Below, one piece after another: positions 1 to 57,627 of a stretch of 64,000 nt of DNA. How positions within the stretch are numbered: the first letter of the stretch is position 1; the number at the start of each line of letters is the position of its first letter. The DNA is from Pelomyxa schiedti (Eukaryota > Protista > Evosea): assembly GCA_020536535.1 (NCBI GenBank), contig JAHLWZ010000151.1, forward strand, positions 1 to 64,000, written 5' to 3'. A program made the position numbers and the translations under genes. The notes below the pieces were generated by a model, which saw only the letters and a list, made by a program, of their open reading frames with translations, was not told the origin of the DNA and ran no database searches.

Positions 1-1895
1 AGTGGAACGCGACCGAGAAGGACATCAGAAGAGGGGGAGTGGCAGTTCACCACCTGTTTGAAGAAAAGGTTGCAGAGAGACCGAAGGCGACAGCACTCAA
101 GTTCATGGACTCCACGGTGACGTACGAGCAGCTGAACAGCAGGGCGAACCAACTGGCACACCACCTCATCGCAACGGGAAAGGTCGGGCCCGGCATCTTC
201 GTGCCGATTGTCGCGGAGAGGTCGATCGAGATGTACGTTGCGGTATACGCAGTTCTCAAGGCGGGCTCTGCATACATCCCCCTCGACCCTGAATCACCGA
301 GCGACCGCCTGTCGAGCGTCTTTGCCGACTCGCAGCCCCCGTTCGTCCTCCTGTCGAAGAAATCTCTCTCCAAGTGCCTCCCAAGCGGGTCTCCGCCCAC
401 CATCTCGGTTCTCGAAGATTCCAACCTTTGGGAGAGCCAGCCCACGTGCAACCCACCACACGCGATCAAGACGGGGCAAGAACCGATTTACGCGATCCTC
501 ACTTCTGGCTCGACTGGAAAGCCGAAGTTGGCTGTGAACAACCACATTGGAGCAGTGAACCACGGACTGTGGCTCACACAAAAGTTCGGAGTCACATCGG
601 ATTCCCGATTCCTCGTCAAGGCACCATTTTACTTCGATGCCTCGGTGGCCGACATTTTCTTCGTGCTCATTGCCGGTGCATGTGGAGTCCTGTGCCCTCT
701 CGGCTCCGAGATGGATCCTGAGGCTCTCTTGAATATCGTTTCCTCGGAGAAGATCACTTGGATCTTCTTTGTTCCGGCGGTTCTGAAAGAGTTCATCAGC
801 GTTGCTCGCTCGAATCCCAACACCAGACAGATGACAACCTCCTTGAAGCTCGTTTATTCGGGAGGAGACGCTCTCCAGTGGGAAGAAGTGGTCAGATTCG
901 TTGACACGTTTGGTCCGCAGGTCCAGCTGTTCAACGTGTATGGTCCGTCTGAGGCCTCCTGCGGAACAACCTCGTTCGATTGCACCGAGGCGCTTCCCAG
1001 CAGGAACACGCTTTACTCATCCAGCCCTGTTGTTCCACTCGGAAGACCGATCGACAACGTGACCGTTTTCGTGCTCGACAGGAACCTGAAGCCGGTTCCA
1101 GTTGGTGTTGTTGGTGAGATTTACATCGGAGGAATCTCGGTGGGGATGGGATACATGAACAGAGACGATCTCAACGCGAAGCACTTTGTCTCTTCCCCCC
1201 CAACGCTCTGCGGCGGAAAGCTTTACAGAACTGGTGACCTCGGCAGGTTCCTGCAGAACGGCGAGATTTCCTTTGTTGGAAGGGCCGACTTCCAAGTCAA
1301 GCTCCGCGGCCTGAGGGTCGAGCTCGGTGAGATTGAAGAGTGTTTCCGATCGAACCCCTTCGTTAAGGACGTAGTAGTGACCCTCAGGGAGGACACACCT
1401 GGGGTGCAGTTCCTTGCTGCTTATGTGGTTCCAACAGAGGAATTGCTTGACAGTGGCTTTGAGGTTGTTGGAACTGGGCCAGTCATTGAGATTGCTGATG
1501 TGGCAGATGATCTTGTGAATTTCGTTTCCGACAGGCTTCCGCATTACATGGTGCCCACTTCGGTTGTTTTGATGGAACACCTGCCCCTCAGTGCCACTGG
1601 AAAGGTAAATCGCCGCGCTCTGCCAATACCGGCAGGAGCCAGTGGGCCCTCTGATGATGACGCACCTCCTTCCACAGAGAACGAGAAGATTGTGTATGAA
1701 GTGTGGAAGAAAGTTTTTGGATTCAGTGGTGGTGTTCACACAAATTTCTTCCAGGCTGGTGGCAACTCAATGCACATGACCAGGATCACATCTGAGATGC
1801 TGACTGCTGGCCTTCATATCACCGTTGAACAGTTCTTCAAAGCACCCACAGTCGCTGGCGTTGCTGCAAATGCTTCCTCGTCCAAATCTTCATAA
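1..1895 (+). CDS. NRPS C-terminal part: adenylation domain plus terminal PCP (T) domain; 5' end lies outside the window
   Basis: Frame open from base 3 (WNATEKD). A-domain motifs YAILTSGSTGKPK, FDASV, YGPSE, GEIYIGG, LYRTGDLG, GRADFQVKLRGLRVELGEIE, LPLSATGKVNR. PCP motif NFFQAGGNSM. No intron, no TE or R domain before the stop. Confidence 0.95.
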   Translation, partial: WNATEKDIRRGGVAVHHLFEEKVAERPKATALKFMDSTVTYEQLNSRANQLAHHLIATGKVGPGIFVPIVAERSIEMYVAVYAVLKAGSAYIPLDPESPSDRLSSVFADSQPPFVLLSKKSLSKCLPSGSPPTISVLEDSNLWESQPTCNPPHAIKTGQEPIYAILTSGSTGKPKLAVNNHIGAVNHGLWLTQKFGVTSDSRFLVKAPFYFDASVADIFFVLIAGACGVLCPLGSEMDPEALLNIVSSEKITWIFFVPAVLKEFISVARSNPNTRQMTTSLKLVYSGGDALQWEEVVRFVDTFGPQVQLFNVYGPSEASCGTTSFDCTEALPSRNTLYSSSPVVPLGRPIDNVTVFVLDRNLKPVPVGVVGEIYIGGISVGMGYMNRDDLNAKHFVSSPPTLCGGKLYRTGDLGRFLQNGEISFVGRADFQVKLRGLRVELGEIEECFRSNPFVKDVVVTLREDTPGVQFLAAYVVPTEELLDSGFEVVGTGPVIEIADVADDLVNFVSDRLPHYMVPTSVVLMEHLPLSATGKVNRRALPIPAGASGPSDDDAPPSTENEKIVYEVWKKVFGFSGGVHTNFFQAGGNSMHMTRITSEMLTAGLHITVEQFFKAPTVAGVAANASSSKSS

Positions 1896-2165
1896 TCTTT
1901 GTTCCCTCACCTACACCTGTGCATTCCTTAAAAACTGCTCCCAATTTTGAATCTTTTTTTCCCCTTCCCCTAGCAACAAAAATTTGTTGGGCAGAACAAG
2001 TGAAGAGAACGCCAAATATCAGGCATCGAATGGCATACACCTGTGGTAGTCGATATTCGCGCAGATTTGGTACCCTCAACCTCTCCTCCGTCTTCTGTAG
2101 TTTTGCCGATTCGTCAATATAATCTGAGATAGTATTTTCTGTCATATTAAACAGTCTAAAATCTG

Positions 2166-3770
2166 ATGTCCAACGAGTTCCAGCTGCCACCGTCGTCGCG
2201 GTCGGGTGCTCCCCCCGCCTACGTTCCTCCGCTCGGGCCGCCTCCCCCCCGCACCTCCGCGCACCCCCCCCAGTCGCAGTCCCCCCGCCAGCCCGCTCCA
2301 CCGCCGGGCGGCCCCGGCGCCCCGCCCTACTCGCTGCCCCTCGCGGCACCCCCGGCCACGTCCGCTTCCTCCGCCGCCTACTTCTCCTCCACCTCTGCCT
2401 CGTCAGCCGCCGCGCTGCCTCCGATGGGACCCCCGCCCGGCTCAATGCCGCCCCCTCTGGGCACTGGCGCGGGGGAAGGAAATAATACTGCCGGGGAGGC
2501 CCTGCGGGCCAAGATTCTGGAGTACTGCAAGGGCCAGCCGAGGACCACCAAGGACCTGAGTAACTACCTGCTCAGAGAGTCGGGATTCACTGATATCCAG
2601 GTCATTGCTCATGAGCTCAACCGCTTGGCAAAGGAAACTGTGTGCCTCCTTCCCCCCTCTTTAACTGTTGTTTTTTTTTTTTTTAATTATACTTCTTGTT
2701 ATTGTTGTTTGTTGCTGCTACTGCTATTTATTTTTTGCTGTGATTTTAGTATTACTATGTCGATTTACATGCGATTTAGAAACAGTTGAAAATGGTGGAG
2801 CACCATGCAAACGGTCGTATGTTTGTGACAACTGGAACCTATGAAGAAGAGGATCCAAAGTAATGTACCTTTCTCTCCCTCAACTGTCATTCAAGTGCAT
2901 GACCTTCCAAACGCGATACAGATTCAAAGGCCTGGATCCTGATGAGCGCACCACCTTGAGCTGCATTGCCCAGGCAATTGATAAAGGCATCTGGATCGGT
3001 GATTTGAGGCACAAAACAGGCTTATCACAGGTCAAAATTGCCAAGTGTATCAAAGGACTAGAGAGTAGAAAGTTGATAAAGCCTGTCAAGTGCCTGAATT
3101 CCAAGACAAAGAAGGTACACTATCCTGGTTGTACGCTGCTTTGTTTACATTGTGAAGGTGTACATGTTGGCGGAGATTGAACCCTCAGAGGAAGTAACTG
3201 GCGGGGCGTGGTATACAGAAAATGCCGAGTTGGATGAAGGAATGGTTACAACTATGTACCAACAGGTCATAGCTTATTTGGGTACGAAGGCATGTCTAAA
3301 AACTTGTCATTTTTTTTTTTTTTTGACTTGCAACAAAGAATTTAGCAAAAGCTGATGAATTCCTGCACTACATAAAAGAGACTGGTATTTTCACTGTGGC
3401 ACTGCGAGTGGAAGATGTGGAGAAATTTCTTCTGACATTGGTTGCCGACGGAGTTATTGATGAAATATACGATCAGGTGTATGGTTTTGCCAAACCTACT
3501 AGCACAAATTACAAAATATAACTCTCATAACTCACAACAAACAGACCACACATACAAAACAAAATGAAAATTCATACTAACACCACTTTGAAGGGATGGT
3601 TTCTCTATAGACTGAAGACCACACACCCGACCCATAATGCACTTGGCAGCACTCCTTGCGCACACTGCCCCGTTGCCTCACAGTGCAGTAGTTCAATGGC
3701 TTCTCCTGTCAATCCTAGATCTTGTGTATATCTTACCAAGTGGTCCCAGGACATGGAAACTTTCTCATAA
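2166..3770 (+). CDS. POLR3F: RNA polymerase III subunit RPC6/C34 (spliced), with Pro-rich N-terminal extension
   Basis: GIWIGDLRHKTGL, KCIKGLESRKLIKPVK, VYMLAEIEPSEEVTGGAWY, and C-terminal Cys cluster PCAHCPVASQC...SCVYLTKW. Confidence 0.92.
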
Positions 3771-4054
3771 GCCATACCCTGCAGCCTCAAGGGAATAAGT
3801 GAAAATAAAAAGTAAAAAAAAATGCCATGTCAGGGCTTGACTCGTGTTTGTTTCATTGTGATCAATGGTTGATTGTATCATCCTCTGGCAAGTTCTTGGC
3901 CACCTTTGTTTTGTATTCTTGTGTTACGGCGCGGCAGCTGGTTTCAATTGTGGGACGATGTTCGGGAAAACAACAAATATCCCATCTCATATGAAACAGG
4001 AACGGATTTGGGCAAAAATTGTGGCAATTATTTTCAAGGGATGCACGATTGTGT

Positions 4055-5084
4055 TTACCAAGGGGATTTTACAGGTTTATTTCTGAACCATCTCTTGAGA
4101 ATGACAACTTGCCCAAGTGAGGCAAGAAAGATGAGGCAACACAAGGAAAGGCTGTACCACATAATGCTGGTTTCAACTTGTTTCACACCTGAGTTTATTA
4201 TGTGAGAAAATTTGGAGATGGTGAAAGGAATTAGTACCTAGGCGTTGGCGGCCTTCTCTGTACTTGTGCTCGTGATATTTGGATGAAATTGTGTGAAGCG
4301 GCGAATGTGTTGTGTGTTTGGTTTGGGGTTTTGTTAGGGCTGTACTATGTGGTAAGGTTTTGACTTTTGAACTGTTGTGACATCTTCCAGTATAGTCTCG
4401 ATGTTGTGCAAAGTGCTGCCCATCACTTTTTTTGTGTTTAATTGCAAGAAAAGGATAAAGAACGGCAGCTACTTATGTCCAAGGGGTCAGCTAGGTGGAG
4501 AGAATCCTCCATTTCAATTTCGAATGATATTACCTTTTCATCAGCTCCTTTATTACGGAAACAGACCTGTGCGTTACATAGGCGATTAGTGTTGACTGAA
4601 CAGCAGCACAAAGAACGCATACGGTATGGAATCCAGCTTCTTCCGTGACGAATTCTACTCCCTCATCAGCGAAGTCTGCCTCCGCTGGAGTTCCTGCACT
4701 CTCAAAAAGCTAGATATCAAAAGTCAAAACCTTACCACATAGTACAGCCCTAACAAAACCCCAAACCAAACACACAACACATTCGCCGCTTCACACAATT
4801 TCATCCAAATATCACGAGCACAAGCAACAACTCAAAACACCAACAATTCGCAAAAAAAAAAAAAAAAAAAAAAAGGTGGGTTCGTAACACACTCTGACAG
4901 ACATGCCCTTCGAGTCTCCCCGCATCAGCACCCACGTCACCATCACCGTCGTTTCCGCGGGTATGTAAAAGTCGAAGCACTCCTCGCCCCTCTGCATCGT
5001 GAACCCAAGGCCCTCCACGCTCCCCGTCGCCGCGAGCAGCGCGACCGCAACCCCAACCACCAACGCCCTGCTCCACCTCCTCAT
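4055..5084 (-). CDS. emp24/gp25L/p24 (TMED) family cargo receptor (spliced)
   Basis: Signal peptide MRRWSRALVVGVAVALLAA; GOLD motifs GEECFDF and FVTEEAGFHTVCFRN; coil YREGRQR; TM and tail IMWYSL...LGQVVILKRWF. Confidence 0.85.
4263..4824. repeat. Perfect 108-bp inverted repeat (arms 4263-4370 and 4717-4824, 346-bp spacer)
   Basis: cttgtgctcgtgatatttgg...tgacttttga is the exact reverse complement of tcaaaagtcaaaacc...atcacgagcacaag. Confidence 0.95.
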
Positions 5085-5519
5085 TATGGGATGTCTCCCT
5101 TTGGTTGTTGTTGACTCTGTGCCTTGGCCTGGTGACTGGCCTCTAGTGTTTTTATTTTTTCTTTTTTTGTTGATTCCTGCAAGTGGATGACAACGATCAC
5201 CATGAGGTTTTTTGGCCTTGGCTACACGATGATACGCACGAAAAAAGACACACGGTTTCACCTCCAGGATTTTTTTTTTTAATTTTACTACATTTTCTTT
5301 GTCTTGAACTTTCTTTGCATGGCAGTTTCGTATGTCTGTTGAGAGGTGAGATACAGGGGAGTAACTTGAGACTCAGCATTATAAAGGAGGCAAGACACAC
5401 CACAGTATTACATAAAACGTGGTTGAACTCAACCTGCCAAGCTATCTGAAGTGGTTGTGGTTGTTGGTGATGGAGGCTGTTGTTGTCATCCACCAAGTAG
5501 ACACAAAAACGCTTTGCCT

Positions 5520-5790
5520 TTGGATCAGCCAAGTCCACACTATAGAACACTCGGCGCACGCCATACGATTGCATCCACCTTTGAGATAGTTCAGAGAGTG
5601 GCTGACATGAAAAAGATTACCTGACACAATTTGAGCAGGGCTTTGATAAAGCACAGCAGCTGCGGTGTTGTTGCTGGCCCTCGTCCTCAGCAACCGCAGC
5701 AACGCGGACGACAAATAAATCATACCCCCTGTTTGCGTTCTTCACGGCACTGCGTGACGACCGGAGACTTCCCGTGTGCAATGGAATGAC
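5520..5790 (-). pseudogene. Relic of an RBR (Ariadne/Parkin-type) E3 ligase RING2 region
   Basis: SKPCSNC followed, after an intron-like stretch, by GGCNRMACAECSIVWTW, resembling KPCPxC...GGCNHMTCxxC...FCW. No intact surrounding ORF. Confidence 0.4.
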
Positions 5791-6557
5791 TGCCTGTGTT
5801 CTTCTCTTTAAGACGCCACAGCGCGTCCACCTCGGCGTGAGTGCTCAGACAACAGCAGCCTGGTACATGATTGCGCTGTTAGTACTTATGTTGCGTTGTT
5901 AAGGTATATTTGTGTTACATCGCCGACTTGTCAAAATCATCGCACCAAAGCACCCATTAAAAATAACAAAAGAGAAGACACCATACCACCGACGCGATTC
6001 GAGTTGCGGTTGTGACCGACGGAGAGCGGCACGTGGCCGTTCGAATGCGAAACGACGGCGCCGTGCTTGTCCTTCATGTCGCTAAGCAACGCTTGCTCCG
6101 CTGCAATTCCCAACATGTGACGAACTCGCGAGCCAGAGTCGGCTCCGCAGTCGCCACCAACAAAACACTTCATTCCAGCATCGCAGTGCCCCCTCCAATT
6201 GTTACTTGCTCTCATCTTGTGACTAAGGTACGTAAATCCACAAACAGCAATGCAGGTATCGGGTAGTTGTTTTTTTTTTGTTGTATCGAGGGCCGAATTC
6301 GTGTTACAAGTTTTTTTCTTTTCTTGCATTTCAAAGACGGTTCTCAGCAGGAATTGCGGTGCTTCAGTTTCTCTAGGCTGGGCATCCGTGTATCAGTGCA
6401 ATATTGTTGTGATGCGTTTCTGGTAATGGGCTGTGGAATTGGAAACAATGTCGTCAGCTGGTTGACACCAATCTAGTTCCCTTCGAGGAAAATGATGCGC
6501 ACTAAAAGCGATTGGCGAATTTGGGCAAAAGAACAAACAAACATTGCAACACCACTC

Positions 6558-9287
6558 ATGAAGCAACCCTCTTGTTTTCAGCTTGGTCTCTTATGCTTGT
6601 TGGTCTGTGGTTACGTTGCTTCTCAAGGTTTGAATTTTTAGAACTTCAACTTGTGAGTGACATGTCCTTACAGAATTGACATGTGACGAGGCGTTGCAAC
6701 AATGGAACCAAAATGTGTACCCATACTCGGAGGAGATGTCGAAGTATTCTTCCAAAAGACTGGACTCAAATGACCTTGGAAAGTGCGTTGCGTGTCTGGG
6801 CCTCTTATAAATTGTACAACAAATTATGTTTCTAAAAAAAAAAAAAACAATCTAGCTATCATAACTGTTTGATGTTGGCTGATACTGCTCACTATTGCTC
6901 TTGTGGGTTCACACTCGTTGACACGTCCGACAATGCAACTAGTACATCACTGCTGGGAATGTGCCTACCGATAGCATGCAATTCCTCTGAGGTAATAACA
7001 CGCTTCTGGGAGATATCATTGTGAGTCTCTTGAGCAACTGTTGTTACTTCTGAGTGCATGTTTCAGAATTCTGAAAATTGAGACTGATAACTATGTGCTG
7101 ATTCTTCCACGAAGTCATTGTCCGGACGAAACAGCTTCATTGTCTTCTGACAATATTGCTATTGCCGTGGTTTCGTTCTTAGGCTTTTTACTGGCACTTG
7201 TCGTTGTTTCGACACTGTGTGAGATAGGAATTAATGGATCCAGGTAAATATTTCTATTATTATCAAATATTCCCTAAGAAGGGGATATTGTGAGTGGGAC
7301 ATTTGTACCGACCAGAAATAAATTTTTCCAAGACGAAGACTTGCTTTTGGCATGGATGACCCACTGCTGTACCGTGAGCATGTTCAGCAATCTATTGAAA
7401 AGGTGCTCTTCATAAAACCAACCCTCTTTTTTTTTTTTTTTAGATTCAGTACAGCCAAAAGCCGAGTCAAATCTTGTGCGATTTGCAACTTCATTCTCAC
7501 TTATTCGGAACATTAAATCAACAGCATTGTCTGTTGACCGAGAGGACGCTTTCCCTGTTTTAAATGGAATCAGGGTCCTCAGTCTCACGTGAGTTGTTTT
7601 GTGTGAAACTATCACCCACATTCCCCAGATGGGTTATTATGGGTCACACCCTTGTTTTTCAAGAGATCTACCTATCAGATCTAGCATGGCTAGAGTGGAC
7701 CACGAGTAACTTTTTCTGGCAATTTGTTACATCAGCCTTTTTTGCTGTTGATACATTCTTTTTCCTATCTGGTACATGACATAGCTATGAGGACAGCTAA
7801 GGATCCTAATGTTTACCAATTAGGATTCTTGGCGGCCTATCATCTCATCAAGGAAATGAAAAGTAAGGGACACATACTTTCACCTGCGCAGTGGATCATT
7901 ATGTGTGTACTACTGCAGAGAATCTGACTTTTACTCATGTTTGAAAAAGGTATGTTCACAGGTATATCCGGTTGACTCCAGCTTTATTTGTTATGGTGTT
8001 AATATCGTGGTACATCTTGCCGTACATGGGAGAGGGCCCTCTATGGTTTATAAATGTCATCATCTTTTCAATTGCTTAGTCTCATGGGCCAGGAGGTATG
8101 TGCAAGATCCATCAACCAACAATTGTGCCGATTACTGGTGGACGAATCTCCTCTATATAGAAAACATTTATCCTTGGGGTCTAGGGGATGAATGTGCTGG
8201 CTGGCTGTGGTACCTCGCCAATGGCACGTGCTGCAACTAGCATCCTTTCACTTTATAACAATAACATGCAGATATGCAATTCTTTGTTGTTATGCCGTTA
8301 TTTGTTGTGGCCTTCTACTTCAATGAGTGGTTTGGATGGCTCACAGTAGTTGTGGCAACATTTACCAGTGTGATAGCAACAATTTGGCTTATGATTGCAA
8401 ACGACTACTCTGTCTATTTCTGGGCCAGCAACTCTGGTTACTGGGACGACGTGTACGTCAAACCGTGGTGTAGAATACAGCCTTACATGGTAATTGACGA
8501 CCGTTTAACTTTATCTAAACGTCACAGGTTGGGATTGGACTGGGGTTTTTATGCTACAAATTTGATCCGGCCAAGATAAAGCTACCGCCTTGGTTAATGT
8601 ACGTGTTGTATGGCTCTTCAGTCATCTTTCTTGGAATTCCTGCTTTTGGTTGCTTCAAATTGTACCACCAGCAATCAGAGGGTACCAGTTATCTACTAAG
8701 CACAATCTTACATACATGTACCAGATGCATGGAGTACTACCATGAATGGTGTATATGGTGGAATTTGTCGCCTATTTTGGGGGCTTGGGCTGGCCACAAT
8801 GGTTTATGTTTGCACAGCAATTGCCAACGAGAAGGAGCCAGCAGAAAATGGCTTTGTTTACTATTCTAGCTTAGTTGGAAAGTATATTTCAGCCTTTCTA
8901 TCCCATGCCTTCTGGGCTCCAGTCGGCAAGCTTACATACTGTGCCTATTTAATGCATCCTGTGTGGTATGCCTCCTTTCCGCAAAAACAACACAAAGCCA
9001 CTCTTCACGTAATGGAGGCACTAACCAAAAACAAAACCAAAAGGCTCACATTTGCTAATGCTCTCCTGGGGGAGTTCGTGCAAATCAGTAACAGCCTATT
9101 TGCATGCTTCTTCCTTGGCAATGTTTCCATTTCCTTGGCTTTAGCAACCGCTCTTCTCCTGCTTGTAGAGAAGCCGTTTGCCAACCTCGAGGCTATCCTC
9201 ATGGGTATGCTCAAGTCCCGAGGTGAGAAGCCCAAAAAACCGGCCCCAAAGCACTTCTACGACTCGCCTGAAATGTCTATAGAGTAA
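6558..9287 (+). CDS. NRF-6-like membrane O-acyltransferase (Acyl_transf_3 family), spliced
   Basis: Signal peptide and Cys-rich luminal domain; LNGIRVLSLTWVIMGHT, FFAVDTFFFLSG, WYLANDMQFF, YVKPWCRIQPY, GKLTYCAYLMHP, LLVEKPF. Confidence 0.9.
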
Positions 9288-9375
9288 ACAAAAAGGAGCC
9301 ACAGTAGAAACACCTTTCAAATGAAACTTTACAGCAAAATAAACCTCACAATAGCGTTGAGCAAAAAAAAACCTC

Positions 9376-11829: not shown

Positions 11830-12039
11830 CGCCCGCTGCGTCGGTCGACAGCCAATCAGCTCCTAATTAAGAACAAACAAGACAGTGAAAAAATGAAGCA
11901 ATTGACTGACTGAGTGGACACCTGTCTGAGATCTCCTCTTCATCCATGACATTCAAAAACTGAGCGTGTGCCACAAGGGTATCACAGCTGGAAGTGGGCT
12001 GATTGGACTTTCTTCCTCCATCTCAACCCAGGCCCCATA

Positions 12040-12470
12040 TCAAATCAGCAGAAAGGTATCAGAGGCATATGGCAGGCGTGTGTGGCTGTCTGAAATTGGG
12101 CACACTGTGTTTGGTGTGCCAGTCGTAGGCAAACTTCTCAAAGTGGGGCGCAGCACTCTTTATCACATTTGGGGTGCCGCCCTTGCAGTTGTCGAGTTGG
12201 ATGTTCTCACTGGTCACAGCAGGACTTTGAGCGTTGATGTAATTCAAGACCTGGAAGCCACACTTTATTTATCCAAGAACTTAGTTTTCATCCATTCTCA
12301 ATTTCAAACAGGTCCGTAGACCCAGCCATTGATGTTGGGCAAGTTGAGGGAGGAATTATGCAAGGGATAGGCCTGTACACCTTGGAGGAGTATTCTTAGG
12401 CAAAGGATGGACACCTCCGCACACGAAACGTTTCGACTTATAATATTTCAACTCACAGTGACACTCCAAC
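12040..12470 (+). pseudogene. Xanthine dehydrogenase/aldehyde oxidase molybdopterin-domain fragment
   Basis: WGAALAVVELDVLTG and [42 protein letters not shown] with in-frame TAG at 12397-12399. The rest of the gene is absent. Confidence 0.85.
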
Positions 12471-12718
12471 TTACATCTCAAGCCCTCCGAGGTCAGTACT
12501 AGGGCGTTCGTGGACAGAAAAGCCCAGTGACTTCTTGAAACACAAACAATCAGTACCAAAATCACAACCCAATAAGCCCGTTTGCTCACTGTGCAACTAT
12601 CTAATTGTGCTCTCAGCTAAAGGATGCTATTTATTCCGCGTGTCATGACAACACCACTCACGTTGGTTACACCTCAAGGCTTTCACCTTGGTAACTTTGT
12701 AGTTGTCATCAATCAGGG

Positions 12719-12852
12719 CCCGCTCCGCTTCCCCGCTCCGCTTCCCCGCTCCGCTTCCCCGCTCCGCTTCCCCGCTCCGCTTCCCCGCTCCGCTTCCCCG
12801 CTCCGCTTCCCCGCTCCGCTTCCCCGCTCCGCTTCCCCGCTCCGCTTCCCCC
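12719..12852. repeat. Minisatellite, 13-bp unit CCCCGCTCCGCTT, about 10 copies
   Basis: Directly visible tandem array with identical units. Confidence 0.95.
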
Positions 12853-13323
12853 ACTGTGCCTTGAGAACCCAGTGCACAACCTTGTGTACACTGTGAAACA
12901 AAAAGAAATATTTTTTGATGAATTTTGGAACCGGTAGAAGTCCACAACACAGTTGGCACCTATTTGTTCCGAACAGAGGTGTCTGAGGTCAAGACCACGG
13001 CACACTTTAAGCGAAAACAATTTGTTCCCCCTTCTGGAGTCTTTGCGGATTGCTCTTCAGCTCGAGAAGATTCGTGAACACTTGGTTGGACTAAAAATGC
13101 AAGGCTGAGAAAATGTCCTGAATCTTTTCGGGTTCTGTTAAGGGAAAGAAATCCACAATCTCAAACTCACAAATCAACAACTCGTAAGTTTACAGTTGTT
13201 GTGAACAGCACAACACTACTGTAGAATTACGTGAATGCATGGAATCTTTGCTTCAAAGAGAAATTTTTCTTTTCTTTTTTTTTTTTTTGCTAACACGGAC
13301 GCGACCTACTAATCCATCAAGCC

Positions 13324-16300
13324 ATGGGCAACTCTGTCGCACCACAGATAGGCATCAACAACGTAGCCGATCTCCCCGACGTTGTTCTACCCCCCAAAAT
13401 AATACATGCGCCGCTTCCCAAAAATGCTCCCTTACCAGATGCCGAGCCCCATGCCGCTACCACTTCTAGTGCCGACGCGCCGCCGACGCAGCTTACCCCG
13501 ATGGAAAGTGCGCTCGCGACGGTCGGCGACCTCACGCTGTACCCAAAGGTCCAGCCCTTCCCGCCCGTCGCCCTTATCGGCGCCAGCGTCAAGTTGCCCG
13601 AAGTCAACGGGTGGGACGACGCCTGGGCCGTTTTCTCGCAGGGACTCGACGTGATGACCCGCTGGCGCTCCGACGACCCCCTCCTCGTCTGCTCTCGCGG
13701 CTTCATCGACACGGCCGAGGAGTACGACTACAAGTTCTTCGGGGTCAAGCACCCCAGGCTGGAGGACCCGCAGTCGTTCGTTACCAAGGAGCTCATATGG
13801 AACGCGCTCGAGGACGCCGGATACTCCCCGTCGATGCTGGCCGCGATGCCCGGGAGGGTTGGATTGTACGGCGACCTGAACCCCTTCTACTCGTTCGACA
13901 TGATGTCCCACGTCATGAAGTCGATGGACGACTTTGCCGTTATGACTCCGCACCTGCTTTTCTCTTCTACTTATACCGTCCCTTTCAAAATCCTCGTAGG
14001 CATTGCCAACGGCATAAAAATGCACGGGCCCGTTCTTCACATATCAAGCGCTTGCAGCACTTCTGCAGCTTGTATGTTGGCAGCTTGTGATGCTCTCCAT
14101 GCTGGTCGTATTGAGATGGGTATTGCCTCTGCGGCTACTATGGCACACCCTCGCCACCCAATCACCGGGTACAGCAAAGAATCAAAGGGCCTGTACAGTG
14201 TGGATGGATATATAAGGCCTTTCGAAGCCAGGGCCTCGGGCTTTGTTCCATCAGAGGGAGGCGCTGTGTTGGTCCTGAAGACCCTTGAGGCTGCCGTACG
14301 CGACAATGACGTAATACATGCTGTGATCGATGGTGTGGGTATCTGCTCCGATCCGTCTGTTTTGCCCTCGCCAGACGCAATAAGTGCAACTCTGGTTGCC
14401 AAGGGTATACTCGAGGCAATGAGGACTGCTGGAGTGAAGAGCAGTGATGAGATAGGGTATGTGGAGTGCCATGGGTCAGCTACAACAGTTGGTGATTTTT
14501 CTGAGATAGTTGCACTTCGTGCTGCATTGCAACATCCAAACAAGTCGCGGTTCTGTGCTCTTGGAGGAAGTAAAGCCAACGTCGGTCACTTGGGTGGATG
14601 TCCTGGCCTAGTGTCCATCATCAAAGCAGCCCTCGTTTTCAAACACAACTTCATCCCACCTCTAGCAAACTTTGAGAATCCTAGCCCTATCGCTGACCAT
14701 ATACTCAAGCAGCCAGGGTGCCCTGTGTTCCTGCCCAAGGTCGGTCACACACCTGCAACCCCCGTTACCAAAATAGGTGTTCAGTGTTCTGGGCCTGGAG
14801 GTGGTTACCACTGGATCCTTTCCAAACCTCCTTCAATGCCCGCTTTCGTGGAATCTGCCGTTTCACGCAGGACTTTCCTTTTATGCACTTCGGCCAAGAC
14901 TTCCACTGCCAATGCCACTCTATCTGAAAATACAACCAATCTCATCTGTGAGAAGCTTCAACAGCCAGGTGGACTTGAGTTTGCAGTTAATGCAGAGTAC
15001 ACTCTTCAAACACGAAGGGAATGCTTCCTTGAAAGGAGTTCCGTGGTTGTAAATCTTTCTTCAGGTAGAAATTATAACTTGTTTACCCAACAAGAGAAAT
15101 TATTATCACTCACCCAACTTTCTTCTCCCATTTTAGATGCCTCTTCCCAACCAGTTGTTCGGCCCTTGCCTGCCGTAAGGAACAGTATCGCCAACCAAAG
15201 TGCTGACGTGAGGGTTGCTTTTGTGTTCTCTGGATTTGGAATCTGCAGTCGTCTTGCGGCTAAGGAGCTTTACCATCAATACCCCGTTTATAGGGAAACT
15301 TTTGATAGGTGCAGCAAGTGCGTACAAGAACTTACGCAGGGAGACCGGAACCTCGTTTTATCAGCAGACGATCTTGCTGTCGACTCGGCAGAAGACATTA
15401 ATGTCGGTGCCCTAGTCTTTGTGACCCTTCAGCTGTGCCTTTCACAACTTCTACTTTCATGGGGCATCGAGCCAGCTTACGGAATGGTTTGCCACAGCCT
15501 TGGAGAATATGCCTGCGCTGTCACAGCTGGAATGTTGACCATTGAAGAGTGCCTAAAACTCACCAAGCTTCGTTTCGCCCTTCTTACAAAGCTGCCAACG
15601 GTTACAGCAGTGGTTGTATCGATGGTAGTTGTGAAGAGAGTATGCGACCTTGTGGCCGAGATTAACAAGTTGGACGATCCCTCTTCCAGTGATCAAATTG
15701 AAGTGACTGTGATGAATAGTCCCACCACTTGCCTTGTAGTAGGATCGCAAGCAAAGGTGGATGCCTTACTCTTGAAGCTTAAGGGAACCGCCTGCAAGAC
15801 TACTGTCTTCGCACCAACTCCCTCTCACTCAAAAAGAGTTACTCCAGTGCTGTCACAATTCCGAGATGCCTTCCTTGGAATGAACATCCCCGTTCGCTCA
15901 GGGAAGTACAGATTTATAAGTTCTCTGAACGCTGATTGGGGGAACATTGAGGATATGGCCTCACCAGACCATTTCTGTGAAGCTTTGACCCACCCTGTCC
16001 TCTTCCACCAAGCCATGCAAAAATTACTCAGCACTTGGATATCGGAGGGTGCCGGCCAAGATCCCCAGAAGGCGAGAAAAATGGTTATATTTGAAATTGG
16101 ATCCAGCTTATCCACCCACATTCAAGATATATCAACTGCTGAATGTGCCAAAGTTCCCAGAAACCAACCAGCAGCCTCTGTGTTGGCACTTCCCCTGTTC
16201 TTGCACCATCGCAATAGCGCGCTCGACGCCGCTCAACACCTGTGTGTGCAACTTGGAACTTCCTGGGTGCATGGAGCCAAGTTTAACTGGACAACGTATT

Positions 16301-16752
16301 CCGAATCTGCGGGAGGGGCTCGACGTCATGTCGTGCCATTGTGCCTATATCCCTATGAGAGAGTAAAAACCACCTTCGACATCCCAAGTGAGCCGTTGTC
16401 TAGAGATGCATTCTTTGAGAAGCTTATGGAAATGCCTCAGCCCAGGTCTGCTCCAGTGCACGAGACAACACCAACGACAGTGGAAGTTCCAGTAGTATCG
16501 GGCTCCACTCTTTCACCCAAAGATGTGGGAGTAATTGCGGAAAAGTGGGCACTTTTCCTTCACACCACGCCCAAGACAGAGGATGACAACTTCTTTGAGT
16601 TTGGAGCAACAAGCCTTACAGCCATGCAAATGATTGCCTCGATCAACAGGGTTCTTGGGCTAACGTTTCAGTCTGTGACCTTCTTTGGGGTTGAACCCAC
16701 TTTTGGTAACCTTGTCCGTGGCTACTCCCAACACAAAGCCTCACGCACGTAG
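13324..16752 (+). CDS. Intronless type I PKS module KS-AT-ACP (1142 aa)
   Basis: KS: DPQ...ALEDAGY, SSACSTS (Cys), ECHGSAT (His), KANVGHL (His). AT: AFVFSGFG, CHSLGEY, PSHS. ACP: FFEFGATSL. No KR, DH or TE. Confidence 0.93.
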   Translation: MGNSVAPQIGINNVADLPDVVLPPKIIHAPLPKNAPLPDAEPHAATTSSADAPPTQLTPMESALATVGDLTLYPKVQPFPPVALIGASVKLPEVNGWDDAWAVFSQGLDVMTRWRSDDPLLVCSRGFIDTAEEYDYKFFGVKHPRLEDPQSFVTKELIWNALEDAGYSPSMLAAMPGRVGLYGDLNPFYSFDMMSHVMKSMDDFAVMTPHLLFSSTYTVPFKILVGIANGIKMHGPVLHISSACSTSAACMLAACDALHAGRIEMGIASAATMAHPRHPITGYSKESKGLYSVDGYIRPFEARASGFVPSEGGAVLVLKTLEAAVRDNDVIHAVIDGVGICSDPSVLPSPDAISATLVAKGILEAMRTAGVKSSDEIGYVECHGSATTVGDFSEIVALRAALQHPNKSRFCALGGSKANVGHLGGCPGLVSIIKAALVFKHNFIPPLANFENPSPIADHILKQPGCPVFLPKVGHTPATPVTKIGVQCSGPGGGYHWILSKPPSMPAFVESAVSRRTFLLCTSAKTSTANATLSENTTNLICEKLQQPGGLEFAVNAEYTLQTRRECFLERSSVVVNLSSGRNYNLFTQQEKLLSLTQLSSPILDASSQPVVRPLPAVRNSIANQSADVRVAFVFSGFGICSRLAAKELYHQYPVYRETFDRCSKCVQELTQGDRNLVLSADDLAVDSAEDINVGALVFVTLQLCLSQLLLSWGIEPAYGMVCHSLGEYACAVTAGMLTIEECLKLTKLRFALLTKLPTVTAVVVSMVVVKRVCDLVAEINKLDDPSSSDQIEVTVMNSPTTCLVVGSQAKVDALLLKLKGTACKTTVFAPTPSHSKRVTPVLSQFRDAFLGMNIPVRSGKYRFISSLNADWGNIEDMASPDHFCEALTHPVLFHQAMQKLLSTWISEGAGQDPQKARKMVIFEIGSSLSTHIQDISTAECAKVPRNQPAASVLALPLFLHHRNSALDAAQHLCVQLGTSWVHGAKFNWTTYSESAGGARRHVVPLCLYPYERVKTTFDIPSEPLSRDAFFEKLMEMPQPRSAPVHETTPTTVEVPVVSGSTLSPKDVGVIAEKWALFLHTTPKTEDDNFFEFGATSLTAMQMIASINRVLGLTFQSVTFFGVEPTFGNLVRGYSQHKASRT

Positions 16753-17879
16753 TGCCCAAGTCCTAAAAATACAATAAACGTGCTCCGAATCAACAATTCC
16801 AAAAATTTTTTTGATACCGAAAATTTGCCTTCAAGTTAGACACGTACAAACAAAAAATCATCTGTAATAGGAAAACGGGTCGATTGGGTGACCGAGAAGC
16901 ACAGCAACGAATAATGGCAAAACTTGCATGTTGTGGCTGTGAATTGAGTGCAAACAACACTGTACAGCACAAATTGGCGCAGACACATCAAGTCCACCCA
17001 TGATGAACGGCTTGATGCCAACTAGTTCCACATAGGTGTTTAATTTTTTTACTCTAATCGAGAATGGAAGAAAAAAACCACTCGCACTGTGACATTGAAG
17101 TTGCTTTGAGTGTCGTTGTTCCCACCTTGCCTGCAAACTGTTCAGCAACCTGGCTTGCTGCTTATTTGAAAAGTCCTGGTAGCTCTCCCTGTGGACTCAG
17201 CAGATTGAATGACTTGCCCTTCCTAATTATTATGCAGGTATGGGAGAAGGCAGCAGAGATGAAAGCCTAATACACCCCAGCCTCTCCTCACCTCTTATTC
17301 TTTGCCTTCCCAGCTCCAATTCTTTACCTTCCGGCTCCAATTCTTTGCCTTGTTCTTATTCTTCCCCTTCCTTCTGCCCCTTCAGGCTCCTATTCTTACC
17401 CTTTCGGCTCTTTTGGCTCCTTTATCACCTGGCTTGCACTTACCCCCTCTCAGTTCCCTCCTGCCCCATAATGGTGCCCCCATAGCTCTCCTGGATCCCT
17501 CCCATCTTCTGGCACTCTCATTACCTCTTCCCACTCATATAGACAGTCAGGGAGCACTACAAGGCCCACAAGAGTCTCCCCATTCCACACAATACCATGA
17601 AAACCAAAACTGGTGATGGGAAAAAAAACTTTTTTTTTTTTTACAAAGTTGTTTTATTGAAGCCACTCTATCTAACCCAACACCATGCAATGAATGGCGT
17701 GACATCCGTGTTGTTTCCAAGCAGAATATTAGATCGTCAACATCCGCACATCGCCGCACTCCATACTTACCTGTTACCGGCAAAGTAAGATTGTGAATGA
17801 AGTAGAACTAAGTAAAACCTGTCAGTAATTCCAAGTGCAACTGTGTGATTCGACTTGAAACCACATCCCAGAACTTCTC

Positions 17880-20800
17880 AATTAAATTTAGGTCTGGGGA
17901 CTGGGGGATTCCATGCAATAAAGCTTCCAGCTGCCGATATTGCAGAAGCAATCTCTGGTGTTTTTTGTCTGTGCTGGGGCATATTATCTAATACCACAAC
18001 ACTGTTAGCGCCTAAGAAAAAGTGAGTAAACATCGTTGAAGCCCTTTGGTTTGTGTATCTGAACGGTGTTTTGCCACGCGGGAGAATTGGGGATCTTGAC
18101 CCACCTCGTCCTGTCCTCTTCTGCATTGGGAACAAGAAGGGGGTGCTTGCTGATATTGGCCCAGTTCATGCTGGTGATGCCGTTCACGTACAGAGTGGAA
18201 AGATTTGACAGTATGGTCAAACGCTCGGGCTTGTTTCGCTCAATGGAGTGCACAATGACAGTTGGATTCTTTGGTGTCAATTGTGCATTGGATGAAAGGT
18301 ACACAGAGAGGACTGGGTGGTTGGCTAACTCCACAAAAACATTGAATTTCTGTTCAAGAGCGCATAAAACCGAAGGGTAAAATAGAACGCTGCACCTCAC
18401 ATTCTTCCACCAGTAATCTGCCCCTGGGGGTTCAGTCATAAATTTGCCGTACACCGTGGAGATCATCGGGATTTTCGGATGTGGTGCAGGAGAGAGTCCT
18501 TCCAACTCGTGAGGCAACTGCTCTTTGATTGGTTCTGTTTGGTAACTGTGGAATGCATTTTGAACATGAAGAAATCTGGCATACTTGCTCTGGGATTTAA
18601 GCTTTTGCTCCAAAGAAGCCAGAGCAGCGGGATCTCCAGCCAAAACCACAGAATCAGCACTGTTAACCGAGGCAATATCAACGCCAGCCACATTTGAGAT
18701 CAGTTCTGTTGCGTCTGAGGCTGACATGCTGATGGCAAGCATTCTCCCTTTCCCACTCAAGGCCTGTTGCAGGCGAGACCTCACACTGATGACAAGAACG
18801 CCTTCCTCCAATGTAAGGTAGCACTCAACTGCTGCAGCCACTTCACCAACACTGTGTCCAACAACAGCATCAGGCACAATTCCCCAGTGCTGCCACACTG
18901 CATTCAGGCCAATTTGGACAGCGAAAATCAACACTTGTGCGAACTGTGTCTGATTCACACGCGAGTCACTTTCAGCTTTGTGAAGTTCCTCGATCACTGA
19001 CCACCCCATCACTCTCCTCCCAATGGAATCAACTTGGGTCATTGCATCATGGAATATCAGGTCATCGGAGAACATCTGCCTTCCCATTGCATACCATTGA
19101 GGCCCCTGACCTGAAAATACAAATAAGACTTTGTTCTTTGTTGTGAGAAGTTGAGATGTTCCAAGCTTCCATTTTGCGTCTGTGGTTCCTTTGGGATTTT
19201 GTATGAAAGTATCCAAAGCACTTGCCATATCTTGTGGATTTGCCCCAGAAGTGCGAGACGCTGGGAATAATGATTCGAGCGTTTTCCAGCAGTATAAATA
19301 ATCTCTGGTAAGCCACTCTTACTTGTTGATAGAAAGGAAATCCACTTTTGTGCACATGCTGTAAGTGCAGCGCTGGTATGAGCAGACAGTGGCAAACAAT
19401 AGAACGGTTGCACGCCAGAAATATTCTTTTCAGAGGGAATGGCCAGTGATTCTGTCACAAGACCATCAGTGCTGTTGCATTGGTTACCTCCAAATCCAAA
19501 CGAATTGGCAACTGCAATCTTCCTTTTGGTGATCTTACTCCACTGTTCACCATTCCATGCGACGGAAAGACTTCCAAAGTTAATATGGGTATCAATAGGT
19601 ACTCTCCTTTGGGGAAAAACTTCATCATGCTAAAGTGGTGTGAGATTTCCCTTTTTTTCCCCACAAATTCTTTTAGTCATAATATCATTATACTCTTGCA
19701 GTATAGAGGAATGTAAATGAATGCAACGTAATGTGTAAACCTGTAACATCAGAATGATTTTTGTGAGACTGGCCAACCCGGCACATGCCTCAGTGTGACC
19801 AATGTTTGCTTTCACTGAACCAATAAAGCAAGGACCTCTTGTTCCAGTTACCTCCTCACTGAAAACTTTCCTAATAGTATCTACTTCAATTGGATCACCA
19901 ACTGGAGTTCCCGTTCCATGAGCCTCAATGTAAGACACATCCACAGGGTCGACCTGTGCCAGTGAAAGAGCTGCCTGCAGGACAGCGACCTGACCAGAAG
20001 ATTTTGGTCGATTGATAAACTGCTTGCTTCCATCATGATTAGTGGCTGTGCCAGATATCACACAGTAGATATGATCACCATCGGCAATGGCAGCTGGTAG
20101 GGGCTTTTTTTTGTCCAAGAAAGAAAAAAAAAAAAAAAAAGGAGGAGTGAGTCGTTAACCTGAATTCAAGTATTATTATGAGAGCATACTTTCAAAAAGA
20201 AGGCAGAGGTGCCTTCGGCCCTAACATAGCCATCCGCGTTGGAACCAAAGGTATTGCATCTGCCAGAGGTCGTTGTCATTCCGGCGCGAGAAACCGAAAG
20301 AGAAAACTGGGGCAGCAACACCAAATTAGAAGCGGCGACCAACGCAGCGGCGCAGTCGCCAGCCCTGAGGCTCGAGCATGCCAAATGCAAGGCAACGAGA
20401 GACCCGCTGCAAGCAGTGTCGACAGTAAGGCTGGGCCCCTTGAAGTCGAAGAACCACGACAGACGGTTGCTCAGCATAGACAGAGCGGCTCCGTTTGCAG
20501 TGTACGCGGAGACGTCGGGTTCGTTCATAAGCACGATGTTCTGGCAGTCGACTCCGAAGCTCGCGACGAAAACGCCCGTGGATTTGCCGCCGCCTCCATG
20601 CGGTAGTAGGTCTCGGTCGGCGGCGCCTGTAGGAAATGTTTCGCCGGCGTCGGCTAGGGCTTCGCAAGAGATCTGCAACAGTTGGTGTTGAACCGGTCCC
20701 AGAAACGAAGCTTCGCGGGCCAACAGGCCGAAGAAAGCGGGTCGCAATGGGTAACTGGATCTTCAAGAGTCCCTGCAAAAGGTGTTTTGATCTTTCCTGG

Positions 20801-20950
20801 AAGGAGGTGTACTTCAGTAGTAGTGAGTATGAGCTGTGGAACTTGTCGAACAGCGTCGGCACAGCTGTGCAACAGGACGTAGTCATCGTCGAGGTTTCTT
20901 GCGGTGGGAAAACGGCAACCGGCAACTCGTCCCAGTTACGGCAACCAAAA
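17880..20950 (-). pseudogene. Frameshifted, truncated, intron-containing type I PKS (KS-AT)
   Basis: VAVTGTSCRLP, TVDTACSGSL, EAHGTGTPVGDPIE, KANIGHTE, NSFGFGG, FVFSGQGPQW, GHSVGE, NAFHS. Frameshifts near 20900, 20740 and 19245; introns near 20102-20190 and 19632-19740; no ACP found. Confidence 0.85.
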
Positions 20951-21822
20951 AGCTTATGCACAGGTTAGAAGGAATGGAACTCCAAAGGGACGTGTTGCGA
21001 AGAAGCACCTGTCCTTGTGCGTGCTCATTCCAGCTTGTACTAGAACTAGTTCTATAAAGAAGGTGCGAATGATGAACATCTTCCATGGGTGTACCGTCCC
21101 CCCCCCCCCCCCCCCACAAGGAGGGCGCCCTCCCTTTCACACAGGTGTGTTCTCCCTCTCCAACCCCAGTGGATTTGCACCAACATCCCTGATATCAGGC
21201 TCATCCAGCTTCACTTTCCTAAGAGCAGAAAGAGATATAGCCACACATTCGATGAAAACGGAATACCCGAGACCCACGCCGTCAGCTCGGCCATCCACAG
21301 AAAAACCAACTCGAATCCGGCGGTCTAGTGACAGACACCAAACCACCCATCTCGCCACCATCGACGTCTTTGTCCAGTCGATAATGGTACAGATATCTCG
21401 CACCAACCACAACTACCCAGCCACCGTCAATGACAGTGGATCACTTTGGGATTACAAGGATCACTTTTACCACTCACTTGGCCCAGGTGCGGCGTCAGCG
21501 CTGCATGGGCGGCAGCACGCCTGCCATAGGCGCTTCCCCCTGTCCCTCTCCCAGCCTCCCGTCGCCCAGGAGACCATACTCCATTAATTATCACCCCGTT
21601 TGGTAACTGAGCACATCCACAAAACTTGCTTTGCTGAATTGTCAATTCACATCCCTTTCTCTAATAAATGAAAGACAGCCAGTCCAATCACGTGGTGCTG
21701 CTGTGTTTTTCTTCCTAAACGCGAACCAGGACAGAATTTTCTTGTGCTTCGACAGACACCATCATTATTGCATCCCCCACGAAAACCAACAAAAAAAAAA
21801 AAAAAAAACAAGCTTGGAAAAG

Positions 21823-44953: not shown

Positions 44954-45053
44954 NNNNNNNNNNNNNNNNNNNNNNNNNNNNNNNNNNNNNNNNNNNNNNN
45001 NNNNNNNNNNNNNNNNNNNNNNNNNNNNNNNNNNNNNNNNNNNNNNNNNNNNN
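44954..45053. other. Assembly gap (100 N)
   Basis: Run of N, followed by about 200 bp of very AT-rich low-complexity DNA. Confidence 1.
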
Positions 45054-57489: not shown

Positions 57490-57627
57490 CAAAGTTGTTG
57501 CTCGGACAGAAAAACACCAAACTTCCCCCTTCGAGGCATTACACTGTGGAATAGAAACAAGCTGGCTGTGTCAGCTTTCCACCCCAGATCATGTTTCAGT
57601 TCCCTCATAGGTGACGTTTCGTAGAAA

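Follow-up and report, generated by a model that had tools for sequence, protein, structure and literature searches.

In fungal HR-PKS-NRPS enzymes such as PsoA (PDB 9x2c), the domains KS-AT-DH-cMT-ER-KR-ACP are followed by C-A-T. In a non-fungal eukaryote, the nemamide pathway of Caenorhabditis elegans (PKS-1 and NRPS-1) is a hybrid polyketide-peptide line on separate megasynthases. In bacterial N-acyl-tetramate lines such as that of reutericyclin (RtcA/RtcB), a terminal PKS module receives its chain from the carrier of an NRPS; in such lines an acyl-aminoacyl chain and one malonyl unit are joined on a minimal PKS, and the product can leave by cyclisation. In the colibactin pathway of Escherichia coli (ClbH, an NRPS, to ClbI), the stand-alone KS-AT-ACP protein ClbI acts in trans on a chain tethered to an NRPS carrier (PMC10491745), and ClbI is found together with a peptide synthetase chain in PDB 8xjz.

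The DNA analysed here (the window) comprises 64,000 nucleotides of Pelomyxa schiedti, positions 1 to 64,000 of contig JAHLWZ010000151.1 (here C151; assembly GCA_020536535.1). An earlier note on positions 1-20950 had proposed a hybrid peptide-polyketide locus in a protist. The locus is indeed hybrid; the junction that could be demonstrated runs from PKS to NRPS in cis, inside one gene, and this giant polyketide-peptide enzyme gene was fragmented by assembly.

The stretch 1-1895 (+) encodes A2-T2, the terminal NRPS module of an HR-PKS-NRPS megasynthase, with the A2 core at ~57-1154, the A C-terminal subdomain at ~1329-1604, the carrier T2 at ~1692-1868 and a stop codon at 1893-1895. The assignment is based on Pfam, on motifs and on a colinear paralogue. 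Pfam matches in 3-1892 (+) were AMP-binding (amino acids 19-384, E 9e-73), AMP-binding_C and PP-binding, and an FDxS-type A4 motif (Asp), the A10 Lys and the GGxS carrier Ser were read in the translation. The A-T part of an NRPS elongation module is present, and the C2 domain lies upstream, on the 2.2-kb contig C2062. The best solved homologues are bacterial NRPSs; the A domain scored 647 bits against LgrA and 176 bits against PsoA. Against the copy on the paralogous contig C753, the dN/dS of A2-T2 was 0.15.

Assembly comparison revealed that scaffold C151 ends at window position 1, inside a gene, the NRPS being cut by an assembly break. The absence of an assembly gap noted earlier is correct for N runs, of which there are none in 1-20950 (the sole gap of the whole window is 44954-45053), but the break through the NRPS weighs more than any N gap. 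The assembly was broken by an intragenic repeat of the A-domain core at 1-1360 (+), which equals the A1 core at C151:93605-94964 (100% over 1360 bases). In the C753 paralogue, which is contiguous and colinear with the entire megasynthase gene, A1 and A2 are 99.93% identical across 1423 bases. C2062 bridges both ends of C151 via exact 121-base overlaps, a length that corresponds to the largest k-mer of the assembler, and consists of a single open frame for an A C-terminus (the rest of A1), T1, C2 and the start of an A domain. The far end of C151 encodes AT-DH-cMT-ER-KR-ACP, a second carrier and C-A. Because the scaffold ends match and C2062 joins them, 1-1895 belongs to one HR-PKS-NRPS as its final module. 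One spliced megasynthase gene of ~16.4 kb is thereby shown, whose 5′ part sits on the opposite end of C151 and whose middle is found on C2062. As deposited, the 5′ part is located 66 kb downstream of the KS-AT-ACP gene; the joined gene therefore requires the scaffold to be circularly permuted, which counts against it.

The domain order of the megasynthase is KS-AT-DH-cMT-ER-KR-ACP, a spliced stretch, a second carrier and C1-A1-T1-C2-A2-T2. The HR-PKS order followed by C-A-T within a single gene is shared with the fungal enzymes. Unlike these, which have a single NRPS module and end in a reductase or Dieckmann cyclase, the amoeba enzyme contains two NRPS modules, whose A cores are identical, and an extra carrier before C1, and it possesses neither a terminal reductase nor a Dieckmann cyclase nor any other release domain. 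The architecture of the nemamide enzymes is unrelated. As both A cores are identical, the two modules probably use one and the same amino acid, which would be incorporated twice. Pfam detected no domain downstream of T2 in 1-1895; in both paralogues (C151 and C753) the stop codon lies ~20 residues past T2, behind a conserved tail. A search for TE (thioesterase) and R domains (NAD_binding_4), as had been proposed, gave no match anywhere on C151 or C753, and did identify an in-frame R domain in an NRPS on C424. The NRPS described earlier as stand-alone and ending in A-T thus keeps its bare carrier and its lack of a release domain, but forms the end of a megasynthase that acts in cis.

A type I PKS module, KS-AT-ACP, is encoded at 13324..16752 (+), with the KS at ~13564-14676, the AT at ~15220-16026 and the ACP at ~16534-16719; the NCBI gene model is named 'polyketide synthase [Pelomyxa schiedti]'. 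The frame 13324-16749 (+) comprises 1142 amino acids with matches to KS_N, KS_C, Acyl_transf_1 and PP-binding (97, 80, 67 and 41 bits, all passing the Pfam cut-offs). Judged from the residues in place (Cys244, His383, His422, AT Ser725 and Arg750, ACP Ser1097), the protein is predicted to be catalytically intact; its AT motifs deviate (CHSLG for GHSxG, GFG for GQG and PSHS for HAFH). A single 72-base GT-AG intron at 15065-15136 is spliced out in RNA contigs, the junction being seen in three RNA runs, and no RNA contigs cover the intergenic stretch 16742-17674. A dN/dS of 0.147 against the C753 paralogue indicates purifying selection. The protein has no release domain of its own, and the earlier description of an intact KS-AT-ACP of this kind is confirmed. 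No homologue with more than 32% identity was found in other organisms, the nearest outside this genome being bacterial.

Among solved structures ClbI (PDB 8xju) is the best match of this protein with 255 bits, all others reaching at most 206 bits. Both proteins are free-standing, have ~1000-1100 residues and carry neither reducing nor release domains. They share 25% identity, and in ClbI, which catalyses cyclopropane formation, Ser replaces the KS cysteine, whereas the amoeba KS retains Cys-His-His. Further differences of the amoeba protein are its unusual AT motifs, its eukaryotic origin, its intron and its distance of 11 kb from the putative donor. The PKS modules of N-acyl-tetramate lines differ from it by carrying a thioesterase.

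The motifs ALEDAGY, ACSTS and NFExP, taken in the earlier note as signatures of a KS that accepts chains from NRPS modules, are present but do not discriminate: 73 of 118 bacterial relatives have ACSTS, most of them single-module KS-AT-KR-ACP proteins, and of five E. coli KS domains known to be fed by an NRPS just one has it. The NRPS-fed ('hybrid') cis-AT KS subclass of NaPDoS2 is a clade of KSs following NRPS modules (PMC9582728). In our KS trees the five known NRPS-fed references form no single clade, and the position of the window KS relative to them shifts with taxon sampling. It groups with HMWP1, ClbK and ClbO (support 90) in a tree of 138 rows and is placed elsewhere in a tree of 56 rows, all branches concerned being long.

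The remaining PKS at the locus (18037..20964, minus strand), described earlier as decayed, has a frame broken by two frameshifts and is a partial copy of the 5′ end of the megasynthase, cut off after KS-AT, not an independent PKS. KS exon 1 spans ~20964-20190 (Pfam KS_N at 20747..20166, minus strand), KS_C 20118-19630 and the AT 19228 to ~18005-18105. DNA identity to C151:82513-85349 is 76-82%, amino-acid identity of the AT is 83%, and no homology to the parent extends beyond the AT domain. In a three-way alignment the frame is broken by a 7-base tandem duplication (20912-20918) and a 1-base deletion adjoining 20741, from which three in-frame TGA codons arise; DNA run X1 carries the same indels. 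The branch dN/dS is 0.06 for the KS and 0.19 for the AT, and the frame breaks are therefore recent. The truncation point abuts a dispersed repeat at 16850..18036, whose homology stops at ~18035-18039. This family has 77 matches in the genome, its copies number in the dozens and are 73-97% identical, and the depth of the DNA run is 140-215 across the repeat versus 12-19 in its flanks.

The interleaved housekeeping genes noted earlier are real eukaryotic genes. Three consecutive exons at 2845..3518 (+) encode the RNA polymerase III subunit Rpc34 (PF05158, profile positions 65-264), which is unrelated to the synthases; they lie ~1 kb past the stop codon of the synthetase. The spliced gene at 6558..9287 (+) probably encodes an NRF-6-like membrane protein of the Acyl_transf_3 family. 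Its claimed identity as a membrane acyltransferase receives weak support: one exon (7564-7776) matched Acyl_transf_3 (PF01757) with E 1.4e-4 and 21.4 bits, below the gathering cut-off of 31 bits, where exons were scanned singly and the joined protein may still pass. A six-frame genome-wide scan did not recover the family at 6558-9287, and a language-model look-alike (atlas) search gave eukaryotic, arthropod-type 'Acyltransferase 3' fragments with scores of 0.88-0.91. A role for it in the pathway would be speculative.

A paired arrangement of the two synthase genes exists at a second locus. On C753 the full megasynthase lies head-to-head with a KS-AT-ACP paralogue, ~0.3-0.5 kb apart. Among the matches listed, no neighbour of this kind accompanies the paralogues on C171 and C291, which consist of PKS only; this speaks for a link between the two genes. 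Synonymous divergence between C151 and C753 is similar in both genes (dS 0.85 for KS-AT-ACP and 0.81 for A2-T2; 0.92 for the HR-PKS AT), so that the gene pair is older than one segmental duplication; since both loci stem from that duplication, the pairing counts as a single observation. In the 52.4-Mb genome, any one NRPS end would be expected to have a KS locus within 21 kb ~0.8% of the time, and chance spacing, against which the earlier note had asked for a check, does not account for the clustering, which is non-random and in part due to local duplication. On C176 a paralogue is a single-frame fusion, A-T-(T)-KS-AT-ACP, whose KS shares a clade with the window KS (support 100); C693 carries a further A-T-KS fusion. 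A third stand-alone KS-AT-ACP paralogue (46-52% identical) on C351 is solitary: neither an NRPS nor a PKS lies within 3-4 kb of it, and the rest of the contig gave no KS or C match.

That the megasynthase and the KS-AT-ACP protein are functionally independent, and their proximity a legacy of one segmental duplication, is a substantial possibility which we consider somewhat short of probable. The KS-AT-ACP protein would then work as a minimal PKS that starts from an acyl-CoA and may be iterative, its product being freed by spontaneous lactonisation or by a hydrolase encoded elsewhere. The solitary C351 paralogue would suit such independence, as would the 11.4 kb and at least four unrelated genes that separate the two genes in the window, the origin of the two-locus pairing in one duplication, and the abundance of such genes in the genome (KS matches on 18 contigs, C-domain matches on 20). 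Against this stand the close head-to-head spacing on C753, the retention of both genes at both loci under purifying selection, and the need of the megasynthase for a trans partner in release, for which no other candidate lies near either locus.

An upstream role of the KS-AT-ACP protein is improbable. A short beta-keto or malonyl-derived unit would here be moved from its ACP to the carrier before C1 by an internal transacylase-like region, much as SAT domains of fungal non-reducing PKSs accept acyl groups from another synthase's carrier. The second PP-binding domain found by Pfam immediately before C1 would provide a target; however, no SAT or acyltransferase family was detected by Pfam in the exons of the spliced stretch before it, the fused paralogues have the KS after A-T and not ahead of C, and T2 would be left bare with no acceptor. 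An artefactual origin of the synthase genes, from a bacterial symbiont or contaminant or as chimeric single-cell amplification products, is very unlikely indeed. The assembly was made from whole-genome-amplified single cells harbouring prokaryotic symbionts (PMC8887013), a source that would allow for it, and the nearest relatives of both the KS-AT-ACP protein and the A domain outside the genome are bacterial. This reading is largely refuted by the spliced transcripts, in which a spliceosomal GT-AG intron is removed in three runs; spliced eukaryotic genes share the contig with no gap between, no bacterial protein is more than 32% identical, and four diverged paralogues each lie on a separate amoeba contig.

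We lean, by a modest degree of confidence, towards the KS-AT-ACP protein being a partner in the pathway of the megasynthase. Its likeliest role, proposed tentatively and in itself rather doubtful, would be a trans hand-off in which the KS cysteine takes the chain from T2 and one malonyl-type unit is added. The pair retained on C753 favours a transfer in trans from T2 to the KS, the fusions on C176 and C693 suggest the same direction, and by analogy ClbI as the best solved homologue also speaks for it. The 25% identity to ClbI and the unstable KS placement weigh against the hand-off, as do the solitary C351 paralogue and the 11.4 kb of unrelated genes. In the proposed pathway, the HR-PKS half would make a reduced, methyl-branched acyl chain, to which the NRPS half would add two residues, yielding an acyl-dipeptidyl thioester on T2. 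After the putative hand-off the product would be released by cyclisation or through an unlinked hydrolase; as the KS-AT-ACP protein also lacks a release domain, the release problem would merely be shifted. On balance, and with slight preference, the stretch may be read as the downstream half of a secondary-metabolite locus, made up of two gene families, with a hybrid polyketide-peptide pathway in this anaerobic amoeba.

The genome of P. schiedti was assembled from single cells with SPAdes, with k up to 121, and was scaffolded afterwards with RNA read pairs (PMC8887013). The assembly amounts to 52,367,397 bases in 5337 pieces, and spliced genes were searched one exon at a time. Pfam models recovered the synthase pieces where the earlier note had put them, namely A-T at 3-1892 (+), KS-AT-ACP at 13324-16749 (+) and KS_N, KS_C and AT at 20747-18005 (-), and housekeeping genes are indeed interleaved, as the exons of the ordinary spliced eukaryotic gene Rpc34 (2845-3518, plus strand) stand between them. 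The statement that the locus contains no assembly gap holds insofar as N runs are absent from 1-20950, yet the first base of the window coincides with the end of a scaffold.

The scaffold in question, C151 (94,964 bases, the window being its first 64 kb), starts and finishes with identical sequence, the window bases 1-1360 matching C151:93605-94964 at 100% identity. At its far end lies an HR-PKS with a KS exon (82492-83235) followed by AT-DH-cMT-ER-KR-ACP in one frame of 2204 codons, and downstream a second carrier, C1 and the start of A1; Pfam found no family in the exons that separate this carrier from the ACP. A further contig, C2062 (2227 bases), shares its first 121 bases with the end of C151 and its last 121 with the start of that scaffold, and its interior is a single open frame for the C-terminal subdomain of an A domain, T1 and C2. 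From the identical scaffold ends and this bridge it follows that the gene runs ...C1-A1-T1-C2-A2-T2-stop, with A2-T2 at 1-1895 of the window. What had been described as a separate NRPS is thus the last module of an HR-PKS-NRPS megasynthase split over three assembly pieces. A contiguous paralogue on contig C753 is colinear over the full length with 77-80% DNA identity, and across 1423 bases its A1 and A2 cores share 99.93% identity. Judging from these sequences, the same intragenic homogenisation of A cores is what broke the assembly of C151.

The reconstructed gene requires that the end of C151 precedes its start. The gap C151:65579-65678 is a true adjacency, since the same 121-mer is found on both sides, whereas the gap 44954-45053 is not; this RNA-based join may be wrong, or the unit may be tandemly duplicated. 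For the scaffold as a whole there are three readings, namely an ordering error of the RNA scaffolder, a tandem duplication, or a circle of ~95.6 kb.

The absence of a release domain after the NRPS carrier was borne out, as the stop codon follows about 20 residues past T2 in both megasynthase paralogues and this tail is conserved. The space between the megasynthase stop and the Rpc34 gene is too short to hide a release domain, and no thioesterase- or reductase-type matches were found on C151 or C753; an NRPS on contig C424, unlike these two, carries an R domain in frame. The C753 megasynthase terminates in -SKL (locus L007, about 5265-5330, minus strand), while the window copy terminates in -SKSS (1880-1895). 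SKL is the canonical peroxisomal PTS1 tripeptide, and anaerobic peroxisomes have been reported for P. schiedti; by their C-termini, the paralogues might differ in location.

The stand-alone KS-AT-ACP protein possesses the KS triad, the AT serine and arginine and the carrier serine, and its AT motifs are unusual. In three RNA runs the contigs start at 15135 and are preceded by the letters of 15033-15062, a junction from which the removal of a 72-base GT-AG intron (15065-15136) is deduced; the NCBI model ('polyketide synthase [Pelomyxa schiedti]', 1118 residues) lacks the same 24 residues. The intergenic region 16742-17674 is without contigs in those RNA runs, and the DNA run reads across it. 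Bacterial contamination as the source of the synthase genes was rejected in view of the spliced transcripts. Compared with its C753 paralogue, the protein is 79% identical with a dN/dS of 0.147 and a dS of 0.85 (dN/dS per domain: KS 0.085, AT 0.12, ACP 0.10), and its closest relatives outside this genome are bacterial type I PKS with 25-32% identity. This KS-AT-ACP lineage is an orphan with no more than 32% identity to any known sequence, and the data show it to be expressed, under constraint and duplicated together with the megasynthase.

Genome-wide, 18 contigs have KS matches and 20 have C-domain matches, so that chance alone would place a neighbour within 21 kb in less than 1% of cases. 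The megasynthase and KS-AT-ACP pairing is repeated head-to-head on C753, and dS between C151 and C753 is similar for both genes (0.81-0.92); similar dS and recurrence together indicate that the pair was already linked when a single segmental duplication copied it, and that each copy has kept both genes. The only other gene common to the two loci in tblastx was a member of a protein-kinase family, which is irrelevant, and no neighbour of this kind was found among the matches listed for the PKS-only paralogues on contigs C171 and C291. It is on balance probable that the KS-AT-ACP protein is a pathway partner of the megasynthase. That the two act independently is a serious rival of lesser but appreciable probability, and it draws on a third stand-alone KS-AT-ACP paralogue on contig C351 (L022, 3767-7008; 46-52% identical to the window protein, with a shorter N-terminal extension), which has no synthase neighbours within 3-4 kb and, being solitary, counts against a strict partnership.

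For the direction of a hand-off, fused genes are informative. The fourth member of the family (35% identical), on contig C176, has A-T-(T)-KS fused in one frame, followed by KS_C-AT-ACP; this A-T-T-KS-AT-ACP hybrid gene (L013, 392-6228) is truncated at the contig start. In a KS tree into which its two exons were entered as separate rows, its KS groups with those of the window and C753 with full support; the Pelomyxa clade is solid and its position among bacterial KSs is unstable. Another A-T-KS fusion is located on contig C693 (L021/L024, about 20250-23350, minus strand). At the level of gene architecture, the two fusions show KSs in this genome that are predicted to accept chains from A-loaded carriers. 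The KS motifs that had been read as an NRPS-acceptor signature do not serve as such, being common in relatives without an NRPS link. The C176 gene has a tandem duplication of the segment made up of A C-terminus and carrier, and its A4 position seems to be without the Asp that binds the alpha-amino group, so that it may use a substrate other than an amino acid. Farther upstream of the C693 fusion there is a weak C-domain match (C693:23752-24452).

The best solved structure for the KS-AT-ACP protein was 8xju (255 bits), identified as ClbI of the colibactin pathway by comparison with clbI of E. coli CFT073; a literature search on the PDB codes 8XJU, 8XJY and 8XBL found no paper. ClbI is a stand-alone KS-AT-ACP that acts in trans, its substrate chain being tethered to the NRPS ClbH (PMC10491745), and the window protein resembles it in being stand-alone, in the same KS-AT-ACP layout and in having it as best structural match. 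The proposal of a hybrid peptide-polyketide locus was confirmed as to the hybrid, but the demonstrated junction is one from PKS to NRPS in cis. Transfer from T2 to the stand-alone KS, as the earlier note had suggested, would tentatively be the likeliest form of the link between the two proteins.

Of the clustering of three synthases only the pair remains, as the 'decayed PKS' (18037-20964, minus strand) is a local duplicate. It copies the KS-AT part of the megasynthase only (76-82% DNA identity, 83% amino-acid identity in the AT), and its homology ceases at 18037, where a dispersed repeat family starts. Its frame is broken in KS exon 1, where comparison with the two full-length paralogues reveals a tandem duplication of 7 bases (20912-20918) and the loss of 1 base adjacent to 20741; these changes give rise to three in-frame TGA codons. 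An origin as an old pseudogene was rejected, since dN/dS on the fragment's own branch, with C753 as outgroup, is 0.06 (KS) and 0.19 (AT), indicating constraint through most of its history and recent breakage. Assembler artefacts are an unlikely source of the frameshifts, as a separate contig set from DNA run X1 is gapless there, though X1 may underlie the assembly. Part of the AT exon is represented in RNA contigs, in which it is spliced into the repeat, and none cover the KS part; one RNA contig links the AT exon to the repeat. The repeat member (16850-18036) belongs to a family with at least 40 loci in the genome at 73-97% identity, and RNA contigs reveal short minus-strand GT-AG introns (17771-17818 and 18012-18104), by which it looks like a multi-copy spliced gene and not a simple transposon.

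The Acyl_transf_3 gene of the earlier note is weak, with a single exon at 21 bits against a cut-off of 31 bits; the genome-wide scan did not recover it, and a look-alike search returned arthropod-type 'Acyltransferase 3' fragments (0.88-0.91). Between Rpc34 and this acyltransferase-like gene lies a perfect inverted repeat with 108-base arms (4263-4370 and 4717-4824) 346 bases apart. Directly upstream of the KS-AT-ACP gene lies a possible gene fragment (11930-12316, plus strand), which matches a molybdopterin cofactor-binding domain weakly and below the cut-off (PF20256, E 3.6e-4). A Sel1-repeat frame of 388 codons without introns (56407-57570, minus strand; E 3e-44) sits in the G+C-richest part of the window (0.58) and is a possible bacterial-type acquisition.

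The natural-product assembly lines of bacteria and fungi have been mapped well, those of protists hardly at all. Within the library searched, no paper mentioned Archamoebae together with polyketide synthases, and the P. schiedti genome paper makes no mention of polyketide or nonribosomal (PMC8887013). The present analysis corrects a gene model in which the last megasynthase module was mistaken for a separate NRPS, and it carries a caution for short-read assemblies of protists, which repeated NRPS modules break at the very places from which domain logic is deduced. By analogy with ClbH/ClbI, an acyl-dipeptide would pass in trans from the last carrier of the release-domain-less cis HR-PKS-NRPS to the deeply divergent stand-alone KS-AT-ACP. 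Such a eukaryotic split line, duplicated as a two-gene unit with each copy retained, is possible rather than probable; it would yield two related lipopeptide-polyketide products in an anaerobic amoeba. The outcome is a concrete two-protein hypothesis, testable in vitro; if true, a trans NRPS-to-PKS hand-off would have been described in a protist for the first time.
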